DNA of 63,278 nucleotides, filler included, from Lenisia limosa (lineage: Eukaryota > Protista > Breviatea), in the NCBI GenBank assembly GCA_001655205.1. It is 9 parts of 9 records of this genome, joined end to end, with 100 filler letters (N's around TTAATTAATTAA, not from the genome) between each part and the next. Parts side by side here need not be neighbours in the genome. Positions count along the whole stretch, not along the records: positions 1 to 26,832 come from LPNZ01009748.1; 8 more parts are not named here. One strand, 5' to 3'. Within the stretch, counting starts at the first letter, position 1. Every line of letters begins with the position of its first letter. The notes beneath the pieces were generated by a model. That model worked only from the letters and a program-made list of their open reading frames with translations. It was not told the DNA's origin and searched no databases. The translations under genes and the position numbers were made by a program. Of the stretch, positions 2,045 to 18,900 are shown piece after piece.

Positions 2045-2515
2045 TCAAGAAAGACTTTGAGTAAACGTACAAATATTCAAATCATCCTTGCAATAAAACT
2101 AAAAATATACATGAATTTGAAATGGGGAATTGGAGTTAATAATAACAGTTTTCCTGCTTAATAGCGACTCTACTTGAATAGCAGAATCATTTTTAAGGGA
2201 TATTATTACAAAGGGCATCTCAAGACTTGGAACTGGATGCATTCTTGTTAAACAATAAAAATACTCATCACCATTTAAAAATTGATAAGCAGCGCTATAT
2301 TTTGCAGAGTTATTCCAGGATAAAAGTGTCCCATCCTTTTTTACAAAACCTACCGACTGCAAAACATTAATGGCATCATAGAGACGGCGTTTTGCATTTT
2401 GTGAAGAACAAGAAGGAATCTTTCCAGATATTGATAAAAATAATTCGTGGCTTGTCATTGATTGTTTTTGTAAATCCAGCTTAACATAATACGAAAACAA
2501 TTTCAATCCTTTCAT
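2045..2515 (-). CDS. Minimal E2F-partner DP-like transcription factor (141 aa spliced), two ultra-short introns
   Basis: KGLKLFSYYV, KRRLYDAINVL and LEMPFVII...FQIH match DP-family motifs (KGLRHFSMKV, RRRVYDALNVL, LPFII...FEIHDD). Removing the GT-AG 24-nt intron 2087-2110 restores FQIH|DD and ends at TGA 2045-2047. A second GT-AG 21-nt in-frame intron is likely at 2244-2264. Confidence 0.8.
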
Positions 2516-3700
2516 TTACCAAGAGGTATGAAGATGTTCACTGACAAAACTGTACTTTATCCCCTGTCAAAACTCTTTCTGAACTAAATCTTCACTTCAA
2601 TCCCACCGGTGTCTCACACATCCAAGAGTTGTGCTTCGCAAGCGTCGCCAAGGGCCGCTGAGTGGGTTGGTGCTAAATCTGACTAAATCAACGGGGCCCC
2701 CCATATAGAGTCCATTGGACCAGTGTATAATTGGGCTTATTTGGCTGATTCACCTTCTTGCCATCTGTACAAGTTTAGCGGATTTTGATATATTGTTTAA
2801 AGAGTTGTGTTATTGAATAAAAAGGTTATTGAATAAAAAAAATGTTGTAGAATTTTAGAATTTCTTCTCATCAACTGAGGGTGATCATTGTCTCAATGGT
2901 GTGGTTAATAGTGTCACAGATCATCCCAGTTTATCTCTATGCATATGTATAGTGCCTATTTCAAAAAGAAAGCAAGCGAAGGTGTCGTTAGTCCCAATCT
3001 TTTGCGACTCTTGCCCTTGTTGCATTCCAAGAATATACAAACAACTATGCTGTTGACCCCCCCCCCCCCNNNNNNNNNNNNNNNNNNNNNNNNNNNNNNN
3101 NNNNNNNNNNNNNNNNNNNNNNNNNNNNNNNNNNNNNNNNNNNTATATCACCCAAATATGTGTCAGACGCCATTATTTGGTAGAATAAGAACATTTATCC
3201 ATAGAAAGGCACGACGGTTGTTAACTTATTCTTCTTTCCCACAACTGACCTCATACGTCCCAAATTGAATTCCATTGTCTGGCTACAGAAAAGCCAACGC
3301 GTTCAGCAATGTTGTCTGGAACAACATATCCCTGTGCGATTGTCAGAACATTAAAAAACAAAGTAGACAGAAAGAACTAGTGTCACAAGCAAACATTGTT
3401 CATGATGGTTGGCTTTGCCCTAGAAAGGGGTAAATAAAAATAACGAAAAAGGAAAACAAGAAGATTGCGACGAGAAACATAGCGGATTCACGAACAGGAG
3501 AACAGGGTAAAAGCCGATCAGCCTGGTGATCTGTTGGAGAGTAGTGGGGTCAGGGGGTCAAGGAGGTGTGGAAGCACGTAGTGGGGTGGGTATGGCGCGG
3601 GCTGTACTGCCAAGCTTCATGAGATGCCCAAACGGGGCTGTGAAAGGGGAGAACAGCGCTCAGGGAGTGGGACATGCCTTCTTAATTTGGGAAAGAGACC

Positions 3701-5530
3701 ATGTTTGACAGAAACCTCCGCCAAAACGCCAGCCAAGCTGCTAGAAACACTTTCCGGAGGGAGGGGGGCGGCGGTTTGGGGGGTCAACCAAATCGTGACG
3801 ACGGATCCGGGAAGGTTGTTTCCCTCCGACTTTTTCAACTCAAGCTGATCGGGTCCATTATGGGCATAAGAAGCCTTATGGTTGTAGCCCCTCCAGGCTC
3901 AGGAAAGTCCCTCCCCTTCCTTGTGGCCGCATATGTCTTGAAGAAAGTCACCTTTGTGAGTGCTCCCCTGGAAGCAATCTGCCTCTTCCAGGTGAAGGAG
4001 TGGACTTCAAGAGGTTTCCCATTCTGTCTCTTCGAGAACCTTCAAGACCATATCCGCCAGTACCACTCCCTCCCTTTTGTTTGTACATGGGTGTGTTTAA
4101 AACTGTATCAAGCTTCGCCTTGGTACGATGTAGGCTACCTGTCTCCTGAGGATATGGTAATGACCGGCCCCAACTGCCGTGGCCCTCTCCTCCACTCCGT
4201 CATTAACATGTACCTTGAGCAGGACAAGATTGCTCTCTTTGTTGTTGACGAGGGTCACCTCACCCCGGCTTGGTTTGTGAAGTATTGATAAGTTTCATGA
4301 TTTAAGACTTCTTTTCGCCCCGCAATGGCTTGTTTACTCTTTTGTTTATTCCCTGAAAGTAAAAGTTCCCGCCTCTGTTGGCCTGGGGATTAATTGGTGT
4401 ATTTTTTTCAGTTTTGTTATTTACTAAATACAAACATAGATTAGGGTTGAATTGTGGGTGATATTATATTATTTGGTTGGTTGTGAGGTTTTCATTCCCA
4501 TGAATTGGGGCAACACATAAGCGATATATGTGGGTCTTCACCCCGGTTCAAAAAAGCCCGGTATAGTATCAAAATTATATTTCTACTACATACCATATAC
4601 TATCATATGTGTTAACGGTTCAGGTGACATTTGCTACCCTCACCAAACGTGAACAGAAGGATATCTGCCACCAATTTGGAATCGACCCAGCTGCATACTA
4701 TGAGAAAGACTCTCGTAGGTCTAACTTGTATGTTGATCTCCGTATTGGCGCAGACAAGAAGCCCTTCTCCGCTTCCACTGTCGTATGCGATTTTGATCAT
4801 TTTTTTTGGCCTTGAATATTATTATGGTGGATACCTTTGTATTTCATCCCCTCACGAATTAGATTGACATGATCCTTGAGTTCACCAAAGGAATACTCAA
4901 GATTTATTTGTGTCCTCTCCCTTGCGTACATCGACATCCTCAAGGAACATTTCCAATTCCACAATCATTTTTGATGATATAATATACATACATAGTACGT
5001 ATCATATCATATTATAAGTCATATACTACATAGTAAGTCTTGACCGATTTCCACACGGTCAATCCATAGAATATCGGTCAAGACTTTTCCCAGTCAGTGT
5101 ATATATATCATATGATATTTAAAAAATAATATTAGTACATATGAAATATCATACTATTGTATATTTTATATTACTACTCTTTGTAGTATCATATACTACC
5201 TGTATACACTGTGTATATAACCTTAGAACAATAAATGTAAAAAATCTGCATTTGACTATGTTCCAACTCATCATTGTTGCTGGTGGCACAGACGCCGAAA
5301 TGAAGATGTTATTCGGCTGGTTGAATCAAACAATAAACTACGCATCATCATTGGGACTGGCGTCCTAGCAACTGTGAGGCATGAACCAAGCTTTGCTAAT
5401 ATTCACTATTATTATCACTTTTTCTCATGTTTTAGGGAGTCAACATCGCATTCCTCGTCAACCTTTTTCTGGTTTTGTGTCTCAGAGACATGGTTTACAA
5501 GGTCACTCATGTGAGCAGGTCGTATTTCTT
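3701..5530 (+). pseudogene. RecQ-like SF2 helicase, spliced and disrupted
   Basis: Motif I APPGSGKS, Ia FVSAPLEAICLFQV and II VVDEGHLTPAW lie in ORF 3701-4288. Downstream are VTFATLT...SRRSNLYV (about 4625-4740), RIIIGTGVLAT (about 5340-5375), GVNI (about 5437) and a motif VI remnant *AGR with TGA at 5512-5514. Frameshifts separate the segments. Confidence 0.7.
5035..5086. mobile_element. Hairpin core of a mini-MITE (family E)
   Basis: Perfect 14-bp inverted repeat AAGTCTTGACCGAT / ATCGGTCAAGACTT, related to copies at 27400-27468 and 52169-52233. Confidence 0.6.
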
Positions 5531-6440: not shown

Positions 6441-9400
6441 TCCAAGTCGCCCGGCTCGGGGAATAATAATCTTGTGGATTGGTGCTGTTTCGTTTATTTC
6501 CTCTTTTTTCTAAACAGTCTCCTTGCATTCAGTTGAAAACCATGTTCTTATTTTACAGATGTCACCTAAGAAGCCAACAAAGAACGCCATTGAACGAACA
6601 GGTAATAGGGAAGTTGTTTCGATTAAGAAGCCGAAAAAGCTGGTACTCAAAATGAAGACATGTATGAGAGAACAGGGCATGATAGGCTGAATAAGAATAT
6701 CATCCTTTTTTCACCTCTTTAGATTTGAATCCATTTCCAAGAAGGTTTCTGATGTTTCTTGTCGTTCGCTTGATGGAAGACGGGGAAGTCAGATTGGTTT
6801 TTAAAATGTTATTTGCACGTAGAATGAAACGAGAAAATCAAAAAACCGAGGCTCATGGGTTTGGGATTGACGCCACAAACAAACGCAATAATTCAGCCCA
6901 AATAATCACCTGGTTGTTTATAATTTCTTCTTCAAATTGTTTTCCAACTTCTTCAATATCGGCAATGATGGCGTCTTGGCGGACAATCTGATTATGTCAG
7001 AGCACTGTCAGAGAAATGAGGCGCAATTAATTGACAAATAGAGCACAGTATCCCAGGCAAAAAGAGCAAAGTATCAATGACAATAGAATACAGACAAATG
7101 GAGCAAAGTACCCCTCATTAAATGGACCACAATAATACGGATGTCCTCAACAAACCAGCGGTTTCAGAAGTTCTCTTCAGCAACAAAGGCAGCAACATCA
7201 GGGAAGATGACCATGTTGAGACTTCATTGTTGTTTCGGTTAGCTTAATAAGTAAGTGACGAACAGAGATATAATAACCAACTTTTTCATCTTTTCTTTCA
7301 GCTTTGGTTCGTTGATAAGGACTGACAATTTTTTCCAGAGGTTCAAGACGGAAAGACGGAATTTGCAAATGCTTGCCTCAATTTTGAATTGAAGGTTGAC
7401 TAATATAATGTAAATACAGAAGTAATTATCTTACCAATTCGCTGTCTGATGGGGAGCTGGACCCTCTCGGCAAAACAAACGCGGTGGTATTGATGTGGTA
7501 GCGTGACCTCATCGGAGGGAAATCGTGCTGATGGTTGTTAGCGATAGATATGTTATACATCTCTTGGAAAAAGTTAGAGCTCCAGCTCAACGATATCCCG
7601 TTCCATACCGTTGAATAATTCACTTGAGAAGAAAATGTGTCGTATCGTATCCAGGGAAAGAGGGTCCCTACTAAATGAGTAAATGCGTTAAACAATAAAT
7701 AACACACAGAACTCACGGAATATTTTTCAATGCAAGAATGCAAGAAAAAGGAATAACACAATAGAAACAGAAAAATAGCTTAGTCAACCCTAAGAAGCAC
7801 ATGTGCGCGAAAAAGAGGTCAGGACAAATAGGAAAAACTGAGAAATGTTGTGTGGAGGAAAGATAGTAGAATAAAAGTGCGGAAATATCTTTTTTTATTT
7901 GAATACAGACTTGTTTACTGGAAAGGAATTTCTCTGGACGCCGGCGGGTATATTCTCGGAAAATAAGTCCCTTCCTTATACCCTGGAAGCTTTCAACTTT
8001 TTCGCTCTAGTTACTCATTTCGTAGTTTTTTACACTCTATATTTCTAATTCCCTTCTCAGTTAGTTCTCTGGGCTTGTCATAAAAGACATGGTTGGTTGA
8101 GGAAACCCTCTTCATGACTTCCCTATCGTATTCTGTTGTTAATTATCAACACTTACGTCAAGTCATTGAGGGACCTCAATTTGAGGACCAGGTCCCCATA
8201 TGCTTCGATGGAGGTTGTTTAAGGCCTAGACTTTCAGGACTGCATTCTAGACCACGAAGGCAAGGTGCAAGGGGGAGGGGGGTATAAACAACGCACATCA
8301 TATATTATCGTATATCATATTTATGCGATGGTGTAGNNNNNNNNNNGTGCCCAGCATTAACAACACTTCCGACATAGATCCAAGACGGTGATCTGTGCGA
8401 TGCTTTGCCTAGATATTTAAACAAAAGCCGCGTACAACAAACTTGTGACCAGGAGGTCTCACTGCATTGTGAAGCTTTTTTTGTGATCTCTCGGAAGCAC
8501 ATTGCCCATTGGCTCTTGGTATCCTTTGGTATTTCAGAAATGTATTTAATCACCAACCATAGCCTCAGATAGCGTCTTTTGTTTCTTTGGAGCCGTTGAG
8601 AATGCATTCTTTAATTTGGACGAAAGAAGATGGAACTAGAGATAATTTAACCATGGAAGATTATGAAAATTTATTAGATAGTAAAGCACGAACTTGTATT
8701 TATCAATCCGTTGTAAAGTCTCATAAAAAAGGAATGACTAGAGCAATTGAAGTTAAAGACATCACACACTTTGGAAACCATTAAAACTTTAGTTTTAGGA
8801 AATCAATTAAAAAAATTTTATGTGTTATGTTTATTTAAATAAGAGAAGGATAAGAAAGTTTGGATAATATATTTAATTTAATCAGCGAACGTATTCCATC
8901 TCATGGTTGTAATTCTTTTCAGAAATTTGACCATGTAAGTACAAATGTACCAATCTCTCAGAAAGATCTTTAAAGGCTTGAAAGTGCGTTATTCATAACA
9001 GATCTTCGATAAGCCTCAAGTCCGGATCTGGTCATTGATATTTTAATACAAACTCATTACTTGTGCAAGAAGATTTCTTCTTAGAAGCAACGGTAACTTT
9101 CTTCAGTTGGAAAGGTTTATCGATCTTGACCTTTGACATTGAGTCGATTAGTTCAGAGAATCTTTACCAACAGAAACCATTGTGGTATTGATTAAAAAGA
9201 TTGACCATTCTAAAAAAATATTTTTTGTACCCAGGAAAAAATACGGATATTATCTTCTTTATTTTTTGAAAATAAATTAGTAAAATTTTTTGAAAAATAC
9301 AATTAAAATTTGTAAAATGAATTTCTTGTTTTCCTCAATAATAGGTCAAATATCACCTGTTTTTAAGATTTAGTAAAATAGTCAACTTACTATAGGGGTA

Positions 9401-9577
9401 CCACATAGAAAATCAAAATCATTTGATGAAAAAATATGTAATATTTCAACACTGTTGACCATGACTTTGCTAGAATAGCCAAAAAAAGACGAATATCGTT
9501 GATTCTAAATAATATTTTTCTTGACATTTGGCAATTAATAATATGATATATATTAACTACCTGAATAGTTAACTATA

Positions 9578-10392
9578 TGGAGTCTGTTGCTGCTGTTCTG
9601 TCATCAGGAAGTGGTAAATCGCTGACCCGTCATTGTTGCGCTTCAGTTTCAGGTTTGTTGTCTTTATTGTTTGAGCATTGTTGCAGTGATCGGGACGGAG
9701 GGGGGGTAGATTTTCGGTCATTTTATTGACTTTTCTGTTTCCCATACACTGAGGTTGTGTACTTCGTCTGTCTCCCTCTTGTCCCAAATTGAAGAACAGA
9801 TCATTCGGATCGAGGATGCCGGCGCCATTAAGGTTCCGCAGCTGAAAGATGTAACCGATAAGACCGAAACATCAAAGCTCCTTTGTCGTTATTGACAACT
9901 TAGTCTTCTTCCCCCCAGAACAGACAAAGAAAGCAATTGCGGTTTTCAAGCGCGCCAGCAAAGCCGATCTTGCAGCAGGTCTTGTACTGGATGAAGCCCA
10001 CAGCTTTAAACAATGGCCGTAAGTGTGGTTTAGCTTTTTTTGTTGGTATAATATAATCTTTTTTATTTTTTTTTATTTATGATGTTTCAATGTGTTTCAC
10101 TCTGCAATGATTGAGCCGCTGAAGTTCTCGATGGACAAAGGATTGGCTCGTTATCTTGGTTGGTTGTGACTAATAAGATCTTTCGAAAAGTTGTGTTTCA
10201 AGAATTTGATTCCCACGGACCCCAAATTTTTCGAGATGCGTTTGCTGAGCTCTTCCCTGTGGTGGTCAACCCACGCATGAACTTGCGGATGGTATACCAC
10301 TTGGAAGATGGCGAGCGGACATACCTCAAGGACACAGAGACCGTTTGTTGGTGCAGTCCTATTAGCATCATATGTTCTTTTGTTATTGTTAT
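9578..10392 (+). pseudogene. RecQ-like helicase fragment, copy A (5'-truncated direct repeat of 12808-13731)
   Basis: VLSSGSGKSL, LVLDEAHSFKQW and NPRMNLRMVY motifs, with frameshifts. Collinear nucleotide similarity to copy B includes the introns. Confidence 0.7.
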
Positions 10393-10503
10393 TTAGTTTC
10401 AGGCTTAGTAGGAAGATAATCTAAACTTCACTTCGGTTCCAAAAAAAGCCTAGTTCATTTACTTTAAAATTTTGAACGAGTGCGAAAGATATGTTATTTA
10501 CAA

Positions 10504-11883
10504 TTAACCCAGAGTAGCCATTACAGCCTTCTGAGCACCATCATCCAGGGATGAAGCTGTAATGATAGGAATTCCAGACTGCTCCAAAATTTGTTTTCCC
10601 TCTTCAACATTCGTTCCCTCAAGCCTAACAATAAGTGGGATTTCAAGTTCAAGATTAGATAGTGCGTTCACAATGCCTCTTGCAATAATGTCGCATTTCA
10701 TTATTCCACCGAAAATATTCACGAAAACAGTTTTAACATTAGTATCAGACAATATAAGTTCAAAAGATTTTGCAATAACTTCCTCAGTTGCTCCTCCACC
10801 AACATCCAAAAAATTAGCAGGACTAACATCTTTGGAATATTGATTTAGAGCAAAAAATAAATAATAATAAAATACCATCCATTGTAGCCATTGCAAGACC
10901 AGCACCATTTACCATATTACCAATCTGTCCATCAAGACCAACATAATTGATTCCAAACTTTTGTGCTTCCACTTCCCTTGGATCCTCCTCTGTTGGGTCA
11001 AACATTCCAAAGACTTCCTTTTGGCGAAACTCAGCAAAATCATCAAAATTCATTTTGGCATCAAAGCAAACAACTTGGCCATCAGGGGTCTCTCCAAAAG
11101 GATTAATTTCCACCTGTGTGGCATCAACCCCCAAAAATAGTTCATATAAGCTGAATATCTATTAAGCCAAAAACAAATAAACTTGTTCTGCAGCAACAAT
11201 AGCCTTCTTCCCTTCAAAACCAAGATGGTCAACCATTTGCTTTGCTTGCTCCTTAGTCACTCCAACATCAATATCAACTGGAATCTGGTCACAAAAGGAG
11301 AATACAGAAAGAATTAGCTCTGGTGTTGCCTCAGCAACCTCTTCAATTTCAACACCACCAGCAGGTGATCCAACAATAACAGGTCCTTGACTTTCCCTAT
11401 CATAAAGAATGGCAAGGTAAGTCTCCCTTTCAATATCAAGAGAGTGTGCAATCATACAATTTTTTACCGCAACTCCCTCCGGAGGTGTTTGCTTTGTAAT
11501 AAGTGATGCTCCAATCATTTTCGAGGCAATTTCTCCAGCTTCCTGTGGACCAATAAAAAACACTAAGAAACTTTTTTGGGAAATGAACTCCTCCTTCAAA
11601 GCCATTAGTGAAGTGACCTTTTCCCCGGCCTCCAGCATGTATTTGGGCCTTCAACACTAGCTCATCGACGTCAAGCTTCAACGCCCCAGCTTCAATCTCT
11701 TCAGGCGAAGAGCCCACCTCAAATTTTTGAATATTGACCCCATACTTGTCCATAAGAACCTTGGATTGAAATTCATGGAGGTTTAAAAAGCGAGTTGCCC
11801 AAGCTGCTGACCTAAAAACACTGCCCTAATAAAAAAAAAAACAGCACTTTGGAAGCCCCGTTAAACAGTTTCAAGCAATTCAT
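10504..11883 (-). CDS. sucC: Succinyl-CoA ligase beta subunit (closest by motif to the GDP-forming SUCLG2 type), 421 aa after removing five 21-25 nt introns
   Basis: [76 protein letters not shown] and VRLEGTN are all present. ATG at 11883, TAA at 10504-10506. Introns: 11826-11847, 11550-11571, 11285-11305, 11159-11182, 10851-10875. 1380-114=1266 nt = 422 codons with no internal stop. Confidence 0.93.
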
Positions 11884-12379
11884 TTCAAAATTTGCCCAAT
11901 AGTCGCCTTGATACCCAAATTTACCAGTTTATACCCAAATTGAGATTTAGGCGGGGGTGACCCCCCCTGCGGCCGGGCGTACCCGACAAGAATGAAGAAC
12001 CAAAATGATAATGGGGGGTTTATATATATATTTAGAGTAAAAGCATTATACCTACCAAACGATAGCTACGAGTTATAGAATGTTGTTTCCGCTATGTAAA
12101 CTCCCTAAAGTCGAAACCTGTCAAAGATGTTATTACCATTTTTTGAAATTTTCTGTTGTTGTGACAAAAATTTGAAAAACTCAAAACAACCCAGAAATAG
12201 AATGTGGTATGAAAACTGGGCGAAAAATTGGGTTCTGCGGCTTTAAAACTCAAAATAACAATTAATGACCTAATTTAGGACCGCGAGCCATGTAGCGATG
12301 TATTATACTATTTGATATCGATTTAGTTATAAATATATATGACCTCCTGAATCTGTGGCATACGACGGATTTAGGAGTG

Positions 12380-12538
12380 GGTTATTATGCAGGGGCTCTT
12401 GTCCTTATTCATGAATCTCCTTGTATGTATGCTGGGGAAGCACGCAGAAAGTTCTGTGCACAGAGTTGTAAGGCAAATGATTGGGTGAATTAATATTACA
12501 CTATAATCCCATATCTCTTTTAGCGTGATTGTGTGGAC
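12380..12538 (+). repeat. Dispersed interspersed repeat family C (about 150-300 bp)
   Basis: Homologous to 58565-58715 (reverse), 33860-33962, 40815-40900, 46020-46070, 51595-51645, 52860-52930, and to fragments at 29805-29835, 30910-31030, 37410-37437, 39290-39330 and 47335-47380. Hallmarks are GATTGGGTGAATTAA and GCGTGATxGTGTGGACGGCTTCGGCCAGATACAACCTT. Confidence 0.8.
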
Positions 12539-12702
12539 NNNNNNNNNNCTTTCTTTATTAAAGGATCAATAAAATCAAAATTAATTTGAGAAATGTCTTT
12601 ATGGAACTGTTGTTGGGAATCAAAGCATTTTTATTGAAGTGCACAGTGTTGATTTGAAAGGTAGTAAAACCCTTGTTGCTGGAAACTTGTAAACACAAGG
12701 TC

Positions 12703-13830
12703 ATGTCCCTGGAAGAAACTTTTCGCGCAAACCCTGGTGCTCCCTCTGTTTCCTCTCCAGATCAGCTGAGTCCTCATCAGATCGAGGTTGCCACTCTTCT
12801 TCTGCGATGGGAGTCTGTTGCTGCTGTTCTTCCAACAGGAAGTGGTAAATCGCTGCTTCCTGTCATCGTTGCGCTTCAGTTTCAGGTTTGTTGTCTTTAT
12901 TGTATGGGCATTGTTGCAGTGATCGGGACGGACGGAGGGGGGGGTAGTTTTTCAGTCATTTTATTGGCTTTTCTGTTTCCCATACACTTAAGGTGTGTAC
13001 TTCGTCTGCCTCCCTCTCGTCCCAACAGTTGAAGAACAGATCATGCGGATCGAGGCTGCCGGCGCCGTCAAGGTTCTGCAGCTGAGAGATGTAACCGCCA
13101 AGACCGACCTCAGCGACGTCACTCTCAGTTTACATCAAATCTCCTTTGTCGTTATTGACAACTTAGTCTTCTTCCCCCCAGAACAGACAAAGAAAGCAAT
13201 TGCGGTTTTCAAGCGAGCCAGCAAAGCCGGTGTTGCAGCAGGTCTTGTACTGGATGAAGCCCACAGCTTTAGACAATGGCCGTAAGTGGGGGGAGGGTAT
13301 GGGTTAGCTTTTTTTGTTGGTATATATGTATGTTTAGGTTACCATTTTTTATTTTATAATATGATGTCTCAGTGTTTCGCTCTGCAATGAATGAGCCGCT
13401 GAAGTTCTCGACGGACGAAGGATTAGCTCTCATGAAGCCTGTTATCTTGGTTGGTGGTGACTCATAAATATCTTTCGAGAAGTTATGTTTCAAGTAACTG
13501 ATATTCACTTAAGCTCTCATCTGCCACAATGACCAAATCGGACCTCAAATTTTTCCGAGATGCGTTTGCTGAGCCCTTCCCTGAAGTTTATAGATAGTTG
13601 GTCAACCCACACATGAACTTGCGGATGGTATACCACTTGGAGGATGGCGAGCGGACATACCTCAAGGACACAGAGGCCATTTGTTGGGGCAGTCCTATTA
13701 TCATCATATGTTCTTTTGTTTTGTTATTATTGGACAAAGTTGAGTTACACTGCCGAAAATAAGAAAAATGTGATCGGTACACCACTTTATGGAAAAGATG
13801 ACAGTCCTGTTTTGCTGAGACCCAAGGTAA
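12703..13830 (+). pseudogene. RecQ-like helicase fragment, copy B
   Basis: Q-motif-like LSPHQIEV, VLPTGSGKS, CLPLVPTVEEQ and LVLDEAHSFRQW. A 1-nt deletion at the exon 2 start (about 12993) relative to copy A breaks the frame. Confidence 0.72.
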
Positions 13831-18362: not shown

Positions 18363-18900
18363 GAGCGCAATAGTTGTTCCTATTGATGATACTGAAGTAA
18401 AGTCAACATTAAGAGGGTACAAACAACCCATATGCTTGTTTGGAGAGGGGGTTTTTCTTTTAATTCTTACGTTGCCATTTGATAGAAGAGCGAGGTTATC
18501 AGCATTCTTATTACAAGGTGATATCAAAGTTTTTAAAAGCAACAATGAATCAGTTCAAGAAGTGCATTCAGCAGTTATTTCTTTTTTGTTTAATTTTTGA
18601 AAGCTTTTTTATCACAAGGTTCAAAGTTACTGGAGAGTTGTAGGCATTATTTAACAGCCGTTTCTCTTAAAAGGTTTGATATTTTGGGATATTTTTTTCA
18701 AACAAAACAGTTTATCAGTTTATTAACTTTCAAAAAGGATCAAATTGTAATTTTTAGAAATTCTAGACCATCTTACCTGTCTCTTTTATCTCAAACTGTT
18801 TTGTTATGCAAATGAGCCCGAAATTAGAAGTGTATCGCTACCTCCATTGTTTTATCTCTGTTTCAGGTGGTAGTAGTAGTACTGTCAAAAATATTTATAC
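18363..18900 (+). pseudogene. PRP4: U4/U6 snRNP Prp4 (PRPF4)-like N-terminal fragment with short introns
   Basis: IVVPIDDTEVKSTLRGYKQPICLFGEG..PFDRRARL matches the Prp4/SFM motif ([33 protein letters not shown]). It is followed by (F)..GSKLLESCRHYLTAVSLKR, matching [23 protein letters not shown]. The WD40 part is largely absent. Confidence 0.7.

Follow-up and report, generated by a model that had tools for sequence, protein, structure and literature searches.

Few signals of eukaryotic gene expression are as conserved as the AG that closes an intron at its 3' end, and exceptions to it are normally isolated curiosities. Non-canonical introns are nevertheless widespread in Fritillaria, Oikopleura, Amoebophrya and the euglenids, where the GT-AG rule is relaxed lineage-wide; in these cases mostly the 5' end or both ends are altered, or the introns depend on base-pairing of their ends. 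The introns described here differ from them in keeping a 5' GT and a terminal G, with only position -2 varying. They come from Lenisia limosa, an anaerobic, free-living protist close to the animal-fungal lineage.

Ultra-short introns are known from ciliates (Paramecium, Stentor), chlorarachniophyte nucleomorphs, Babesia microti, microsporidia, dicyemids and myxobolid myxozoans, with AG as the only remaining 3' signal, and breviates are absent from the lineages named as having such short introns (PMC13644364). Like the introns of Lenisia, they have a narrow length distribution (15-27 nt), a 5' signal reduced to GT(a), a T/A-rich composition and, a few bases short of the 3' end, an A that is weakly conserved; unlike them, they are reported to be AG-ended, whereas two of the seven transcript-supported Lenisia introns end in GG or TG (PMC13644364).

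The terminal dinucleotides seen in Lenisia are the same as those of rare U2-like mammalian introns, namely GT-TG in GNAS, TSPYL2 and ARS2 and GT-GG in BANP, which are efficiently removed despite their non-AG ends; in BANP, GG replaced an ancestral AG (PMC4176328, PMC1557818). These mammalian introns are long and carry strong polypyrimidine tracts, whereas the non-AG introns of Lenisia measure 22-25 nt, and they make up a few dozen out of several hundred thousand introns, as against two of the five in a single Lenisia gene (PMC4176328, PMC1557818). Non-canonical 3' ends also occur among U12-type introns (eight cases of GT-GG and one of GT-TG; PMC1557818, Table 2), in which, as proposed below for Lenisia, distance to the branch point decides on the 3' site and different terminal dinucleotides are tolerated (PMC1557818). 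U12-type introns are far longer, however, and neither the U12 5' motif (RTATCCTT) nor the branch motif (TCCTTRAY, 10-15 nt from the 3' end) is present in the Lenisia intron sequences. Full-text searches, outside which lies the description of Lenisia (Nature 2016), turned up no publication on the ends of breviate introns, those of Lenisia included.

Structure and surroundings of the gene

The window, i.e. the whole stretch of Lenisia limosa DNA that was analysed, is 63,278 nt long. A database look-up places the organism among the breviates, and the gene-bearing DNA is nuclear. The gene lies on the minus strand, with its ATG at 11883 and its TAA at 10504, and is organised as follows:

10504..11883, minus strand: succinyl-CoA ligase beta subunit gene (SUCLG2-like, GDP-type), ATG to TAA, six exons and five introns
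11826..11847, minus strand: intron i1, 22 nt, GT..AG (GTGCTG..TATTAG)
11550..11571, minus strand: intron iA, 22 nt, GT..GG (GTTTCTTAGTGTTTTTTATTGG), non-AG 3' end
11285..11305, minus strand: intron i3, 21 nt, GT..AG, in frame and stop-free
11159..11182, minus strand: intron i4, 24 nt, GT..AG, with an in-frame TAA and TAG inside
10851..10875, minus strand: intron iB, 25 nt, GT..TG (GTATTTTATTATTATTTATTTTTTG), non-AG 3' end

Beyond the three canonical GT-AG introns, the frame shifts at two sites, A and B, which correspond to iA and iB. Excision of all five introns (22, 22, 21, 24 and 25 nt) yields a spliced coding sequence of 421 codons plus stop in a single open frame. Coordinates, lengths and intron sequences had been given in a preliminary description of the locus, together with the 421 restored codons, and all were reproduced when recomputed. 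Translations of the exons matched the pig and human GDP-forming beta chain in a PDB search (E 2e-29), and precomputed Pfam assignments place PF08442 and PF00549 on P0274, a near-identical isoform of the product. The predicted protein has the ATP-grasp_2 and CoA-ligase domains at full length and in an uninterrupted frame, and its alignment with full-length homologues supports assignment to the SUCLG2/SucC family.

The surroundings of the gene are rich in repeats. Direct repeats of about 0.8 kb flank it at 9579-10384 and 12810-13720; they are 80-96% identical and lie about 3.25 kb apart. In them are ORFs resembling helicases (Pfam DEAD), with the motifs GSGKS and DEAH, and a third such ORF is found at 3686-4285. 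A repeated element or a gene family is the probable source of these copies. The segment 12162-12537 reaches a depth of up to about 87,000 in the contigs of DNA run X2, compared with about 40 for the gene, and borders on the N run at 12539-12548; either it is a repeat of very high copy number or something abundant in the culture shares its sequence. Twelve N runs of 10 to 131 bases between 177 and 24245 show that short contigs were joined into a scaffold here. Coding sequence is sparse, three genes being recognisable in 26.8 kb, unlike the compact genomes that are usually tied to tiny introns. Rfam and tRNA scans of the window revealed no ncRNA.

Transcript evidence for the intron borders

Two Lenisia limosa proteins in EukProt (EP01086), P0274 and P0390, derive from the Trinity de novo contigs TRINITY_DN81_c0_g1_i1 and i2. 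P0274 was retrieved with a profile built from exon pieces and full-length homologues, and its sibling P0390 was then obtained by exact look-up. Over all 421 amino acids P0390 is 100% identical to the product of the five excisions proposed in the preliminary description, whose claim that the gene is intact is supported. It reads ..GGVHFPKNPQEAGE.. across site A. Excision of i1 is needed to reach this protein, and the seven residues that i3 could encode are missing from it. Both isoforms carry the non-AG junctions and are without all five introns. As de novo assembly by Trinity assumes no splice sites, the contigs constitute independent evidence that mature mRNA is without exactly these bases. 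All five introns are precisely removed from mature poly(A) mRNA, a result obtained at the protein level, the junctions being read through the protein predicted from the transcript and not as nucleotides; an exact look-up of contigs encoding P0390 found none on record.

Every excision within +/-30 nt of each border was tried against the transcript protein, which at site A is reproduced by the 22-nt GT..GG excision (11571-11550) and by no other. For the 25-nt deletion at site B there are three equivalent notations, GT..TG, GG..TT and TG..TT, and none of the AG-ended excisions within 30 nt of the borders yields the transcript protein. The introns are removed at these borders, at GG and TG ends as had been claimed. 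The residues at the junctions fit the family, K-N-P at site A matching K-D-P of pig SUCLG2 and ALNQY at site B matching IINLY of an aphelid homologue.

Three GT-AG options were considered at the two sites. At site A, a 29-nt option (11571-11543) is out of frame and is rejected by the transcript protein; a 19-nt option (11561-11543) is in frame and is likewise rejected. The latter would read HFPKKFLS directly followed by EAGE, exceeding the family length by one residue and dropping the conserved Pro aligned with pig and human SUCLG2. At site B, a 46-nt option (10875-10830) is in frame, is rejected by the transcript protein and deletes five residues of the MATMD-to-PANF segment that are present in every homologue. 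Real AGs lie unused 7 nt beyond the end of iA and 21 nt beyond the end of iB. The preliminary description had been right about the frame of the 29-nt option and the loss of family residues from the 46-nt one, and had missed the in-frame 19-nt possibility.

That the 19-nt and 46-nt options should be the main products, and the transcript forms minor or artefactual, is made conceivable by both options being in frame, but the non-AG junctions occur in both Trinity isoforms and the options would cost the protein conserved residues (the Pro of K-N-P and five of the MATMD-to-PANF segment). Microhomology at the borders, 0 and 2 nt, is too little for template switching to have produced a transcript artefact. 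We regard this explanation as very improbable.

Sampled 31-mers of the gene were also looked up in a k-mer index of X1, a poly(A) RNA run from the same study, where 0.75 of them are present; the ceiling is 0.80 if the gene is fully spliced and would be 0.88 if iA and iB were retained (p about 1e-5).

Two further observations concern other transcripts. P0274 (isoform i1) ends in ..SSLDEGADRRAHV, its last 12 or so residues differing from the product of 10504-10545, and no part of the window encodes this ending, which could reflect chimerism at the end of the contig, an allele, or an alternative 3' end that escaped notice. A 227-nt RNA contig of X1 matches 10877-10916 (40 nt) with two mismatches and continues as ..MATMD-IIKLSGGNPA... 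It is the transcript of a different SCS-beta gene with the loop typical of the family, which belongs either to a Lenisia paralogue or to another eukaryote in the culture. Among the X1 records that passed a filter, this 40-nt match was the sole one along the gene, and none represented the gene itself. Scans of JGI metagenomes for the junction pattern and for related loci returned nothing closer than 59% identity.

DNA accuracy and copy number

The DNA sequence of the gene is accurate. A Logan contig from X2 (1802 nt, depth 40) equals window positions 10310-12111 with 0 differences, and the SPAdes contig L001 of ENA (coverage 36) agrees at every base over 8347-12538, all DNA assemblies having probably been built from the same reads. 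No variant letters and no joints occur within the gene in X2, as judged from contigs, in which rare forms could be missed.

An assembly or sequencing error, with AG at both sites in the true genome (TATTAG and TTTTAG), would be favoured by the T-rich, low-complexity sequence of the two sites and by the fact that one base change at -2 would make each intron canonical. Against this, two assemblers gave the same bases at 36-40x depth. Substitutions that survive a 40x Illumina consensus are very rare, and two of them falling exactly at -2 in one gene are implausible. A third GT..TG candidate, supported by homology, lies 7 kb away. An error at both sites is extremely unlikely in our view.

Another possibility is that the mRNA comes from a second, near-identical copy or allele with AG ends, the copy in the window being mutated and not productively spliced. 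The existence of two Trinity isoforms, the C-terminus of P0274 that the window does not encode, and the ability of Trinity to combine reads of different copies where their exons are identical would be in keeping with this, but several observations speak against it. The X2 contig that spans the gene stands alone and bears no variant letters, and the X2 comparison would have placed on this stretch, and listed, every copy with a likeness of 95% or more. At a depth of 40, the gene is covered as deeply as the unique sequence on its flanks (38-46), not twice as deeply. In the protein collection the ORF of exon 4 is found on one contig only, the next-best relative being 73% identical; a protein search with exon 4 only had this genomic ORF as its sole find and missed the transcript protein. 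P0390, moreover, bears the window's own C-terminus together with both odd junctions. Neither the X2 contigs nor the protein collection revealed a second copy or variant of the gene, and we hold its existence to be very unlikely.

Since the assemblies are identical, the depth is that of a single copy and exon 4 lies on a lone contig, neither a consensus error nor a second AG-bearing copy is a likely source of the non-AG ends. The gene is also distinct from a pseudogene or decaying copy, in that an exact transcript product exists and no second copy was seen. The preliminary description had named decay and consensus error as alternatives that would refute it, and these gained no support from the X2 and SPAdes contigs or from the copy search.

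A shared intron pattern and its putative mechanism

Two other genes in the window contain introns of the same class:

2045..2515, minus strand: DP/E2F-family gene used for comparison (Pfam E2F_TDP), spliced product P0392
2264-2244, minus strand: DP intron 1, 21 nt, GT-AG, transcript-supported
2110-2087, minus strand: DP intron 2, 24 nt, GT-AG, transcript-supported
18451..18474, plus strand: candidate third non-AG intron, 24 nt, GT..TG, proposed from homology

P0392, the EukProt Lenisia limosa protein TRINITY_DN1662, maps exactly to the DP-like gene. The candidate intron interrupts an SFM/PRP4-like motif in an ORF at 18385-18597 (plus strand). The score of PF08799 is 41.4 bits after the 24-nt GT..TG excision (18451-18474), compared with 31.2 bits after a 21-nt GT..CG excision, 29.2 bits for the unspliced sequence and 27.8 bits after a 35-nt GT-AG excision. 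Apart from the PF08799 motif, this ORF has a weak match to human Prp4, and no WD40 or Prp18 domain was found downstream of it. Pfam searches of the other ORFs in the window gave no further recognisable genes for the intron survey.

The eight introns of these three genes measure 21, 21, 22, 22, 24, 24, 24 and 25 nt and form an ultra-short class, all below 30 nt and narrowly distributed across genes. All are T-rich, start with GT, as U2-type introns do, and end in G, and all carry an A at position 16-20, 4-7 nt ahead of the cut; this A is presumed from its placement to be the branch point. Of the seven that are transcript-supported, five end in AG, and iA (GG) and iB (TG) do not. Any AG that one of the eight introns has at 21-24 nt serves as its 3' site. 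In the three non-AG introns, positions 10 to 28 are free of AG, and their later AGs, at 29 nt in iA, 46 nt in iB and 35 nt in the SFM/PRP4-like ORF, are unused. Early AGs are skipped as well: internal TAGs lie 9 nt from the 5' GT in iA (11563-11571) and 12 nt from it in DP intron 2 (2099-2110), which points to a minimum distance for use of a 3' site.

Our preferred reading, which we consider highly probable, is that of an intact and expressed succinyl-CoA ligase beta gene from which all five introns of 21-25 nt are removed, two of them at GG and TG ends, the 3' cut plausibly being set mainly by geometry and a G. With two introns cut at GG and TG, and lengths confined to 21-25 nt, Lenisia seems to choose the intron end by distance plus a final G. 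A 3' site set by length and terminal G is consistent with the eight introns, a small set of which seven are transcript-supported.

A non-spliceosomal route, such as non-conventional excision of the euglenid type or DNA elimination similar to that of ciliates, might be suggested by the fact that iA and iB lack the AG by which spliceosomal 3' ends are defined. Both, however, agree with the gene's AG-ended introns in length, in T-richness, in starting with GT and in where the A lies, and no joined form at iA or iB, as expected of ciliate IES-like excision at the DNA level, is present in the contigs of DNA run X2. This is the least probable of the explanations weighed here.

The spliceosome would be the agent in our preferred reading, and the introns would be ordinary major-spliceosome introns, so shortened that geometry mainly sets the 3' cut. 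Cleavage would take place 21-25 nt from the 5' GT, 4-7 nt past the only suitably placed A, and at a G. An AG within the 21-25-nt reach would be used, being preferred without being required; with no AG in reach, the cut would be made after a G there and not at a more distant AG. Structures of the second catalytic step of splicing have established that the last G of the intron pairs with its first G and that the A at -2 contacts the branch A. The contact between first and last G may have been retained in Lenisia, and that between the -2 A and the branch A relaxed to the point of being dispensable.

How far this extends beyond the window can be suggested with some reserve. It is possible, if somewhat doubtful, that Lenisia limosa, and perhaps breviates generally, have a relaxed 3' splice-site recognition, in which a substantial share, roughly a tenth to a third, of the 21-25-nt introns end in NG and the distance to the cut is counted from either the branch point or the 5' site, the terminal G alone being required.

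The GG and TG ends described here, on introns of 22 and 25 nt, sit in a central energy gene, and with them breviates join the short list of lineages with introns below 30 nt. If such ends are frequent, Lenisia would offer a natural system for studying how the second splicing step finds its site in introns whose length barely exceeds what the catalytic core can span, and one in which the terminal G and the -2 A can be told apart in their roles. If the proposal is true, gene finders that assume GT-AG would mis-annotate many Lenisia genes, and models that are agnostic to splice sites would be needed for this organism and for its relatives too.
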